A stretch of DNA of 64,000 nt from Octopus sinensis (Eukaryota): assembly GCF_006345805.1 (NCBI RefSeq), contig NC_043008.1:39122001-39186000 (forward strand). The letters run 5' to 3'. Position numbers and translations under genes: made by a program. The number at the start of each line of letters is the position of its first letter. The first letter of the stretch is position 1. The notes beneath the pieces were generated by a model that worked only from the letters and a program-made list of their open reading frames with translations, ran no database searches and had not been told where the DNA came from. Shown piece by piece: positions 24,734-47,895 of the stretch.

Positions 24734-27700
24734 ATGAAACTTTTACGTTTGCTTTTTATACTATTCAGTTTTTTGCCTTTAAAGGATGGGAAATATATTA
24801 TTAAGTTTAAAGGAGAGTATTTTCCCCCAAGTAGCATTCCTTCTAATCCACTGGATCTCTACTATTCTGTCCCACTAAATCAAACGATTAGCAGACCAAT
24901 ATTTGCCGTGATACAATTAAAGAACGGGGCTCTGTTATCACCAAAGCCAACATCAAACATAACAGCAAAAGTGACATCACTGGATGTTAAAACAGCCGAA
25001 AACAGTTCCCATTCAGATACTTGGGCTGAGAGTGGAGGTAAATTGTGTCAGAAAACAGCATGGTGGCTGGGTTATCCGGAGAGATTAAATAGAGAATATG
25101 CGAAAACCCGGTGTGGGTCACCGAATTCTAAAGTTGAATTGAACATTGAAATATTTAAAGGAGAAATAATAATTGACTGGATCTACCATGAACATACAAT
25201 ATTACCGCCTGGCCCACGTGTGCTGAGAATTGAGGTCCCCAAATATCACGCAAAAACTGATACTAATCCAATACGCATTACAGTTCCTGCACATCATTTG
25301 AGAATTACCAAACAACCTCCAGCATCAGTAAAAGCGAACCATAATTTCGATGTTGAGGTCGAAATTCGGGATAGCAGCAATAAACGAGTAGAAGATGGCC
25401 TTGATTCAGTGGCATTTGTTATATTAACAGTTCCGTATGACTATAAGAAATTCTATGCCGACAAAAAGAGAGAAATGATTTTAGCTATGACAGAAGTTAC
25501 GCTGGACGCTGATGAATTTTTGCTACATCTCAACACACGAGATTTGTCTATTCGTAAACAAGCGGTGAAGGGTAAAGTTGTTTTCCGAACTATTCGAATT
25601 TTAGATGCAGTCCATAATTTTCAGTTAAACATAACGATGACAATGGCACGTGATCCTTTTACTAGAATTCCATCTTGTCCGTCTTGCTATATCGATCTCG
25701 ATCACTATGAAGTTTCAGATGATGGCAAATATTTTATGTTCACTCGTGTGACAGGTGCGAAACAGGTGAATATATTGCCTATGGTTTTCACGTCTTTAAT
25801 GAGAATCGAGGCTCAGCATATATCGAAATTAGTTCTCGATAAAAGAGTGGCGGAAAGATGGAATAAAATTCGAGATCCCAAAACGAAAAGAATCCCTATG
25901 TTAGTAAGTACCTACCTCCCTGGTGGATTTTCTCTTATTGCGTTGGATAGCGATGGGCGTCGAATATATTCTGGGCCAGATTCAGATCAACCTTTAATGT
26001 ATGTTACTATCCCAAGCGGAGTTTGTATATCTTCTGATACTGTTTGTAAATTAAAAAGGGGAAGGTCTGTAATATACCTATCAATATGCGAGATAATTGA
26101 CAAGGTAAAATTAATATTTCAATCTTCAACCAATGGCACCGTTAGATATGCAACGCCAGAATTTAGTGTCCGAGGTAATATTTCAATTGTCCACCTTGGA
26201 GATCTTCACTACAGTGGTTCTGGAGAAAACGTTGATTCTCACGTTAATACTTTCATTCAACTTGCTGTAAATGATATCAACAATGGAATATTAGTTCCGT
26301 ATTTGAAAAGGAAAGGCGTGTGGTTCAGTGTAAAAAGCATTGACACTAAGAACGATGTATCGACTGCTTACAAAAACTTAAATGATTTGACTTCAGAAGA
26401 TAATCTGCTTCGTTTTGATAGTATACGTTTAGTGATTAGTAGCGTGTCATCAGAGATTTCTGAAGCAGTGTACCCATTACTTCTGAAAGGGCGTTTACCA
26501 TTTATTGCAACCGCTAACATTGGACTTGATAGCAGCATTCACAAAAAGTACAGATATCTCAACAGAGTTAGCTGGACAGAAGATGCACTAATTAACTCAG
26601 TACTGCTGGCCTCGAAAGAACGCAAATGGTTTAGGATAATAACGATCCGTTATGAAGAAACTCGTGTGAGCCCTCGGTTTTTCTTCTATATGAAAAAATA
26701 TGGAATTAAACGAGTCGGAAATATTATCCTACCGGTTGTTAAACCTCATAAAAATAAAAAAATGGCTGATAGATTTTTCTCATCACAAATGATACGCGTT
26801 GCAACTCTGGGTGGTAAAATAATATTTTTTTTTGCCCCAAAGTTTATTCAACCCTATGCCTTATACGGAGCATATTTGAGTGGCCTCTCTTCGTTGCATG
26901 GTTTTCAATGGGTGCTATTTGGTGAACATGTCTGGCAATTCCCGTTTGATGATGAAGGTGTATGCAGCAAAAATTCAATGAAGATAAAATGCACACAAGT
27001 ATTTGCAGGTACAAATTTGTTTAGCGAACAATATAATATAAGCGGCTATAGTTCATCTGACTGGTTTCGAGTATACGGTAACTGGTTTGCAGCCGACAAA
27101 ACTATATACAAAGGCGGAAGTGTCAGCTACAGACCCAACTATATTGGTGCAAGAATGGGGCTTGGATACGATGCTGTGCATCTTTATGCAGCCATGCTGG
27201 CAAAAATCCTTGGTCAACATCTGACAGCAACCGGTAGACTACAGGCAGATGAATTACGAAAACTAAAGATCCATGGTTTGACTTCTGATCTTGAACTTGA
27301 TAACGAGGGACACCGTATTGGTTACTTTGGATTTTTAGCGCAAATTAATCCCAATACTAACCGAACAGGTTCAGACGAAGAAAAAGTCCTAGAATTTACA
27401 AGGTTCTTCCGGCGACTCAACCATTCTACTCAAATAGAAATACCATATTTTGCAATAAGAGATTCCGGAAGGCTTGACACTGAGGCTCAGTCTACACTAC
27501 CGAAAGCGACACAATACAATCTCCGTAGATATTGGTCGTATTCAGGAATGATTGACGTAATCACACAGAAATTGGCTAGAAATCCTCGAGAAAGTTGGCC
27601 AACAGTTAAAATATTGAGAACTGAAAAGGTCTTACCAGCTTTCAATTGTCAAAATCCGTGCGGGAGAAGAGTGGTAAGCCCAGAAGATATAAATACTTTC

Positions 27701-47895: not shown

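Follow-up and report, generated by a model that had tools for sequence, protein, structure and literature searches.

Receptor guanylyl cyclases (rGCs) as such are well known. The closest solved relative of the cytoplasmic part of the proteins considered here, human NPR1 (also named GC-A; cryo-EM structures 9bcv, 9dzh, and 9bcl), is a single-pass receptor in which an ectodomain of the ANF_receptor type is followed by a pseudokinase with the motif HG-LKSSNC, which a coiled coil links to a class III cyclase. Lineage-specific multiplication of these receptors has also been reported. For example, the oyster Crassostrea gigas has 23 RGC kinases (PMC4883820), and the gcy genes of Caenorhabditis elegans have sensory roles in the responses to salt, alkalinity, and odor (as cited in PMC4883820). 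With regard to gene structure, single-exon tandem arrays are regarded as a characteristic sign of retroduplication for many families of chemoreceptors, the octopus chemotactile receptors included (PMC11526382), and SYCP1 of amphioxus is an example of the replacement of a gene by its retrogene (PMC5803294). Here, we describe a 64,000-nucleotide stretch of Octopus sinensis DNA (NC_043008.1, positions 39,122,001 to 39,186,000 of the forward strand; hereafter the window, in whose numbering coordinates are given) that carries two large neighboring rGC genes. The explanation that we consider probable is that they belong to a tandem single-exon array of an old protostome rGC subfamily, shaped by retroposition, birth-and-death, and gene conversion, and that their products would work as dimers gated by Venus-flytrap domains.

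Copy 1 (ORF1, for open reading frame 1) occupies positions 24734–29815 and its paralogue, copy 2 (ORF2), positions 42826–47895, both on the plus strand; each is a single-exon coding sequence, of 1693 and 1689 amino acids (aa), respectively, plus the stop codon. The two proteins are 78% identical from end to end with only four gap positions, and the nucleotide (nt) sequences are 85% identical. An earlier note on this DNA had reported two uninterrupted frames of about 5.1 kb, within positions 24734–47895, in repeat-rich surroundings, and had assigned both to the rGCs. Their coordinates and intactness have been confirmed by the ORF listing and by translation, and the surroundings do contain fragments of reverse transcriptase of the long interspersed nuclear element (LINE) type (939–2492, 15577–16485, and 52672–54045), together with many microsatellites. 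The rGC identity is likewise upheld by the Pfam domain set and by a complete catalytic signature that aligns to human NPR1. In fact, the longest other ORF in the window is a reverse-transcriptase fragment of 517 aa, and about 1690 stop-free codons in DNA of 37% G+C cannot be attributed to chance. No additional rGC copies or fragments were found by tblastn across the 64-kb window.

Both ORFs match ANF_receptor, EGF-like, protein-kinase-like, and Guanylate_cyc families of Pfam in the usual order of rGCs, and all the sequence-level features of this class are found in them: a signal peptide and one transmembrane segment, the ANF_receptor domain, the pseudokinase, the coiled coil, and the cyclase. 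The similarity of the cytoplasmic part to NPR1 extends over residues 1155–1671 (phmmer, E 1e-118). The kinase-homology domain of ORF1 (residues ~1136–1420; 28139–28993, plus strand; PF07714, E 9e-28) carries HGRLKSSNC instead of an HRD catalytic loop; this motif aligns to HGNLKSSNC of NPR1, and the catalytic Asp of HRD is absent. It is followed by a coiled-coil linker (residues 1421–1484) and the class III cyclase domain (residues 1485–1668), which together span 28994–29737 of the plus strand (PF00211, E 1e-63). The motifs of class III cyclases carry two metal-binding Asp residues, a Glu and a Cys that specify guanine, and the catalytic (transition-state) Arg and Asn. In the octopus proteins, these motifs are identical to those of NPR1 (9bcv), namely FSDI, KVETI-D-YMVVSGLP (KVETISDSYM), RIGIH-GPV (RIGIHSGPV), and MPRYCLFGDTVNTASRMES. 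Since the catalytic motifs are the same, the enzyme encoded by ORF1 and ORF2 should be an active guanylyl cyclase. After the cyclase, ORF1 has a tail (residues 1669–1693; 29738–29812) that is conserved in the family and ends in ...LPD.SLA...S.H.FK, with HKFK in the octopus copies; this tail may be a docking or trafficking motif.

On the extracellular side, copy 1 begins with a predicted signal peptide (residues 1–19, MKLLRLLFILFSFLPLKDG; 24734–24790, plus strand), which is hydrophobic and after which the mature N-terminus is kept across the family. The following ~470 residues (20 to ~480; 24791–26173, plus strand) would form an N-terminal all-beta module, an array of beta-sandwiches resembling immunoglobulin (Ig) or macroglobulin (MG) domains. 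In a Pfam scan at E≤1, this module had no match in 15 of the 16 family members, and the sole match (E 0.27) is at the level of chance. The structural statements made here refer to predicted models built on 16-sequence alignments. The AlphaFold2 model of the module is all-beta, with a predicted local distance difference test score (pLDDT) of 88.6 and a predicted template modeling score (pTM) of 0.81. Foldseek searches with it returned MG-type arrays (complement C5/C4 and alpha-2-macroglobulins) and receptor arrays of the Ig superfamily, with query-normalized template modeling scores of 0.12–0.24; these low overall values would arise because the orientation between domains differs from that in the matched arrays. 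No specific structural homologue of the module can be named, as only generic Ig/MG beta-sandwich arrays were obtained. In the model of the whole ectodomain (pLDDT 81.9), the module leads straight into an alpha/beta Venus-flytrap domain of the ANF_receptor (periplasmic-binding-protein type I) family, at residues ~482–904 (26177–27445, plus strand). The corresponding Pfam model, PF01094, exceeds its gathering score in both proteins (E 4e-16 in ORF2 and 1e-6 in ORF1), and the closest solved structures found by Foldseek are the ligand-binding domains of the metabotropic glutamate (mGluR), calcium-sensing (CaSR), and GABA-B receptors, with target-normalized scores of 0.57–0.72. Between the flytrap and the membrane there are three Cys-rich EGF-like repeats (residues ~972–1072; 27647–27949, plus strand; Pfam EGF_DL_JAG/EGF_TEN), in which 18 Cys residues are invariant across 17 family members. 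The single transmembrane helix of ORF1, at residues of about 1076–1098 (27959–28027, plus strand), is the only segment above 1.8 in a Kyte-Doolittle scan, in which the hydrophobic stretch extends over residues ~1072–1102.

A separate observation concerns residues ~170–235 of ORF1 (around 25241–25438 of the window, profile positions ~150–215), where the pattern PA..L.ITKQPP...AN..F....EIRD......GLDS matches a repeat in very large proteins. This repeat is present 5–29 times per protein, and the one named example is bacterial (a Bdellovibrionales metagenome-assembled genome, MCB0421093.1) and also has MAM domains. The repeat is left unannotated by Pfam in those large proteins as well, and it may represent an undescribed Ig-like repeat family common to bacteria and animals.

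The comparison with the systems mentioned above shows both likenesses and differences. The octopus protein is about 630 aa longer than NPR1, with the extra ~470-aa beta-sandwich module and the three EGF-like repeats before the membrane, and its coding sequence is a single exon. A sequence match between the two ectodomains was undetectable with phmmer. Oyster and nematode rGCs share with the octopus genes their lineage-specific multiplication, but the beta-sandwich module, the EGF repeats, and the loss of introns are not described there (PMC4883820), although a protein of the bivalve Saccostrea does match the module. The chemotactile receptors of octopus are also intronless tandem genes; however, this likeness is one of gene structure alone and has no bearing on function, as those receptors are nicotinic-receptor-like channels of a wholly different protein family. 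In fact, no Cys-loop channel domain was found in the Pfam scan of ORF1 and ORF2. The family differs from all the characterized rGCs compared in its N-terminal module, its EGF stalk, and, in cephalopods, its single-exon structure.

The large ectodomain is not confined to octopus. Full-length relatives of similar size are found in Octopus vulgaris (P0012, encoded on another chromosome, 40% identity), in Argonauta, and in the abalones Haliotis rubra and Haliotis rufescens, the Haliotis counterpart being a protein of ~1680 aa with the same architecture (39% identity, 100% coverage). The distribution of the N-terminal module was assessed by an exhaustive profile search of 1.84 billion representatives, in which the complete module was found only in rGC-type proteins. 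The named matches come from the bivalves Sinanodonta, Tegillarca, and Saccostrea, the gastropod Gigantopelta, and the centipede Strigamia maritima. The Sinanodonta protein is partial and has the module, the ANF and EGF domains, and the pseudokinase. In the centipede protein (T1JDE2, 1836 aa), Pfam likewise recognizes the ANF, EGF, kinase-like, and cyclase domains, and the protein aligns by hhalign to columns 102–1052 of the ectodomain profile (probability 100, E 1e-83). The presence of this ectodomain in Haliotis, bivalves, and Strigamia indicates that it is ancestral to at least molluscs and arthropods and is not an octopus invention; the large ectodomain would be ancestral to protostomes, and only intron loss and tandem multiplication would be specific to cephalopods.

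These data bear directly on the possibility of a cephalopod- or octopus-specific new family, in which the enlarged ectodomain would have arisen together with retroposition and tandem expansion. The cephalopod genes are indeed intronless and tandemly multiplied, and the N-terminal module has no Pfam model. On the other hand, the ~1680-aa architecture exists, with introns, in Haliotis, a partial bivalve protein shares it, the module matches another gastropod and two more bivalves, and the centipede has the architecture too. We therefore regard such an origin as very unlikely, and as refuted where the ectodomain is concerned; this was the point on which the earlier note, which had taken the enlarged ectodomain for a novelty of the lineage, did not hold. 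That note had also weighed whether orthologues with the same architecture and exon structure might prove widespread in molluscs and already described. The architecture does occur widely among molluscs; the exon structure, however, differs, and a published description was not found. Database names for the family are only generic ("speract receptor-like," "atrial natriuretic peptide receptor 1-like," "gcy-4-like," or "uncharacterized"), and literature searches returned nothing relevant on this rGC subfamily, on intronless cephalopod guanylyl cyclases, or on EGF-containing rGCs. The family is an old protostome rGC subfamily that has apparently remained undescribed.

The genomic context could be extended by comparison with O. 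vulgaris. The window aligns at 97–99% nt identity to chromosome OX597825.1 of that species (GCA_951406725.2), at 28.44–28.50 Mb and in reverse orientation. This reference has a third intact ORF of the same length (copy0), 24.4 kb upstream of ORF1; its end falls just outside the window, ~90 bp left of base 1. The same chromosome carries, at a distance of ~70 kb and oppositely oriented, a second sub-array with one intact and three decayed copies. The decayed copies are located at L011:22-3935, 9767-12710, and 22540-27568. Two of them share a deletion of ~350 aa (residues ~650–1001), which suggests that an already deleted copy was later duplicated; one copy is frameshifted near codon 1460, which could equally be an assembly error. 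Another example of clustering is found in Argonauta hians, with three intact single-ORF copies in 24 kb, one of them inverted. The tandem expansion put forward in the earlier note is thus extended by copy0, by the sub-array, and by the Argonauta cluster, and the family is a tandem birth-and-death array with at least three intact members at the window locus.

Current gene models do not reflect this organization. The top database match of the window (99% identity) is the RefSeq O. vulgaris model P0001, a "speract receptor-like" protein of 2485 aa. It fuses two paralogues: the C-terminal half of copy0 supplies residues 1 to ~810, and ORF1 from residue 18 supplies the remainder, with a 24-kb "intron" between them. 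The junction joins a chance donor (CAA/GTGAGT) in the cyclase of copy0 (L009:7550-12610) to a pyrimidine-rich acceptor ending in ...TTTAAAG, TTTTTGCCTTTAAAG, which lies inside the ORF1 signal peptide (24770–24790). The cryptic donor was considered as an ancestral intron position and rejected, as the Haliotis intron sits five codons upstream. Models P0003 and P0004 and a model of 3707 aa are similar fusions. In Argonauta, models P0007 and P0008 take an internal Met as their start and lack the signal peptide; their ORFs (L003:9836-14860 and 18373-23505) reach further upstream to a Met with a signal-like segment (MIITCFFFLTYFIL), so that the real proteins have ~1670 aa. With RefSeq O. vulgaris and Argonauta models fused or truncated, studies of expression or orthology built on them will miscount the family.

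The history of the two window copies is more complex than that of a simple duplication. Their nucleotide homology (24581–30020 against 42673–48107, at the 85% identity given above) extends beyond the ORF by ~155 bp on the upstream side and by ~200 bp on the downstream side, and the duplicated block is bordered on its 5′ side by a (TACA)n microsatellite of 1.1 kb directly upstream of ORF1 (23402–24512) and on its 3′ side by a (GAT/GAC)n microsatellite (29851–30215). Synonymous divergence (dS) between ORF1 and ORF2 is a mosaic, being close to 0 in codons 61–420, 721–843, 1145–1204, and 1505–1684, and 0.5–1.1 elsewhere. A three-way comparison with P0002, the orthologue from another octopus species, gives a concordant pattern: in codons 1–350, 701–850, 1151–1300, 1451–1500, and 1601–1693, third positions included, ORF1 and ORF2 resemble each other more than they resemble P0002, and in codons 401–700 and 901–1150 ORF1 is far closer to P0002 than to ORF2 (88% against 55% in the transmembrane region). 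The longest identical run, of 298 nt (25137–25434, plus strand), lies inside the tract 24581–25930, and the number of such runs expected under uniform divergence is ~1e-18. Further tracts, with identity of at least 0.91, are located at 26981–27280, 28181–28630, and 29081–29830 (plus strand). By contrast with these tracts, the most diverged segment (27431–28180, plus strand; 55–72% nt identity) covers the end of the ectodomain, the EGF repeats, the transmembrane helix, and the juxtamembrane region, and a second diverged block (25931–26830, plus strand) comprises the last part of the N-terminal module together with lobe 1 of the flytrap. The conserved 5′ flank of copy 1, of ~155 bp (24581–24733, plus strand), is near-identical in copy 2 (42673–42825) and is kept in another octopus species; it holds CTATAAAC about 65 nt before the ATG, and is a candidate core promoter plus 5′ untranslated region.

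The segment-wise discordance with P0002 indicates that the duplication would predate the split from the P0002 species and that conversion came later. Gene conversion, as read from these alignments, has homogenized about half of each gene together with the 5′ flank, and flytrap lobe 1 and the EGF/transmembrane/juxtamembrane region appear to have escaped it and remain distinct. Very strong purifying selection could be invoked instead to account for the identical tracts, some of which do overlap conserved domains (the pseudokinase in codons 1151–1300 and the cyclase in codons 1601–1693). However, third positions in the tracts are 94–100% identical between the paralogues against 72–87% to P0002, dS in the tracts is near zero, and the largest tract lies over non-coding 5′ flank and over the N-terminal module, which evolves fast, so that selection alone is an extremely improbable cause. 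A new element here is the segmental gene conversion, which would have spared the parts likely to bind the ligand and those next to the membrane.

Purifying selection on these genes, another claim of the earlier note, is confirmed by the ratios of non-synonymous to synonymous divergence (omega) between ORF1 and P0002. These were obtained by the pairwise Nei-Gojobori method at a dS of 0.33, and are affected by the conversion tracts. Omega is 0.37 for the whole gene, and its values are 0.54 in the N-terminal module, 0.45 in the flytrap domain, 0.55 in the EGF repeats, 0.39 in the transmembrane and juxtamembrane part, 0.24 in the pseudokinase, and 0.09 in the coiled coil plus cyclase. This gradient is what a functional receptor would be expected to display, with a tightly constrained output domain and a faster ectodomain. 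The decayed copies of the sub-array, with their deletions and frameshifts, show the fate of copies that are not constrained.

The intronless structure noted at the outset holds well beyond the window. In H. rubra, ~33 coding exons were recovered by tblastn from a gene that spans 82 kb. On the other hand, a single uninterrupted ORF is found in ORF1, ORF2, copy0, O. vulgaris P0012, and the orthologue P0002, and likewise in Argonauta P0007, P0008, P0015, and the inverted copy, and in two contigs of assembly ERZ21867824; the comparison covers every cephalopod member with readable DNA and one non-cephalopod gene structure, that of H. rubra. In a simple distance tree (neighbor-joining) rooted on Strigamia, Haliotis branches outside the cephalopods, which form two intronless clades, both at 100% bootstrap. 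As every inspected copy is intronless in both deep clades, one event before their split is the most parsimonious. The simplest reading would be a single retroposition before both cephalopod clades and Octopus and Argonauta separated, followed by duplications at the DNA level. One processed copy would have replaced the ancestral gene of ~33 exons, and this retrocopy would then have been multiplied by local duplication at the DNA level, with birth and death of copies. The situation resembles that of amphioxus SYCP1 in that a multi-exon ancestor is seemingly represented in one lineage only by single-exon copies; it differs in that the loss of the octopus parent gene is only presumed, and in that the octopus retrocopy would have gone on to found a large tandem family.

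The way in which the receptor might work can be proposed by analogy with NPR1/GC-A and with class C G protein-coupled receptors (GPCRs; mGluR, CaSR, and GABA-B). The protein would act as a dimer. An extracellular ligand would engage the flytrap domains and alter their relative orientation, perhaps with the aid of the N-terminal beta-sandwich array, which may serve as a co-receptor or as an adhesion-type surface. The EGF stalk, presumably rigid and rich in disulfides, would pass the rearrangement to the transmembrane helices, and the pseudokinase and coiled coil would then relieve the inhibition of the cyclase dimer, with a rise in cyclic GMP (cGMP). In class C GPCRs the flytrap is also joined to the membrane by a disulfide-rich module, which suggests, by analogy, the same way of relaying a rearrangement of the dimer. 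However, the octopus output is a single transmembrane helix with a pseudokinase and a cyclase, not seven transmembrane helices, the stalk is EGF-like and is not the Cys-rich domain of class C, and the likeness concerns the overall flytrap fold of the model. Given the near-identity of their coiled-coil and cyclase regions, paralogues might plausibly form heterodimers.

Several observations weigh against the explanation given here or narrow it. At the position of the pseudokinase where NPR1 has its beta3 lysine (VAVK), ORF1 (residue 1155; 28196–28198), ORF2, and P0002 have Asn, a further difference from NPR1, and copy0 and most family members have Lys (WYVK); the change may affect nucleotide binding or regulation of the pseudokinase in the sub-clade formed by ORF1, ORF2, and P0002. 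The proposed mode of ligand binding derives purely from the fold similarity of the models. When the two window proteins were looked up as exact sequences in the assembly collection, no record was obtained, and the Logan contigs of the orthologue (L005 and L006) start and end in microsatellites, so that a genomic unitig cannot be told from a transcript. With regard to retroposition, none of a poly(A) remnant, an A-tract, a target-site duplication, or a flanking direct repeat was seen in the 5′ and 3′ flanks, which consist of the (TACA)n and (GAT/GAC)n microsatellites described above. Only the octopod homologues returned by the protein search were checked for an intron-bearing parent, all those inspected being single-exon, and the split between Octopus and Argonauta is the only bound on when the introns were lost.

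The last of these observations lead to stepwise intron loss, by partial-cDNA recombination or genomic deletion, in place of one retroposition with loss of the parent. It would suit the invisibility of a poly(A) tail and of target-site duplications, the locus is a DNA-level tandem array, and just one non-cephalopod gene structure was examined. Nevertheless, all the coding introns are gone from every inspected cephalopod copy, in both deep clades and on different chromosomes, for which a single event before the clade split is more parsimonious, and the marks of retroposition are not expected to outlast an event older than the Octopus–Argonauta split. We consider stepwise loss unlikely, and a single retroposition is retained here. 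The look-up and contig results, for their part, raise the question of whether the copies could be retrocopies that are not expressed, or pseudogenes too young to have acquired stops: they yielded no evidence of transcription, and decayed copies do lie 70–100 kb away. Against this, the three neighboring copies and the cross-species orthologue all retain 5.1-kb ORFs, the omega values were reached at an appreciable ORF1–P0002 divergence, unconverted blocks with dS of 0.5–1.9 are stop-free, the truly decayed neighbors carry deletions and frameshifts, and the 5′ flank is conserved across species. It is highly improbable that the window copies are pseudogenes, and functional receptor genes remain the preferred interpretation.

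The rest of the window is repeat-rich and shows other features. The same LINE-like element occurs twice, at 15000–18115 and 52718–55729 (89–94% identical), with the reverse-transcriptase ORFs 15577–16485 and 52672–54045 on the minus strand; one element lies 5′ of ORF1 and the other 3′ of ORF2, and the pair is younger than the rGC duplication and has no evident relation to it. A unit of ~670 bp (18115–18781) recurs three times at 50024–51918. Six overlapping ORFs of 145–390 aa on both strands, including those of 253–390 aa at 23316–24559, are frames through the (TACA)n microsatellite and hence were rejected as genes. Within a stretch richer in G+C (6–10 kb, 43–45% G+C), a 184-bp unit is repeated twice with a 91% match (7628–8000), which may be an element resembling a short interspersed nuclear element. 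Finally, a match to the U6 spliceosomal small nuclear RNA covers the full model length at 59528–59623 on the plus strand (63.6 bits for a gathering score of 44, E 1e-13), and could be a gene or a U6-derived retrocopy; a tRNA scan of the window was negative.

As for the role of these receptors, the present data speak neither for nor against chemosensation. A broader reading, to which we give a low probability, is that of a hitherto unrecognized protostome rGC class with a flytrap plus a Cys-rich stalk and an added beta-sandwich array which, after retroposition, would have become in cephalopods a tandem family of environmental, chemosensory, or gamete-recognition cGMP receptors, with selection keeping the ligand lobe and the stalk and transmembrane part distinct amid conversion. 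The family offers an evolutionary case in which complete intron loss would have been followed by tandem birth-and-death and by segmental gene conversion. In addition, its range spans molluscs and at least one arthropod, its first 470 residues lack a Pfam model, and it constitutes a class of receptors open for ligand study.

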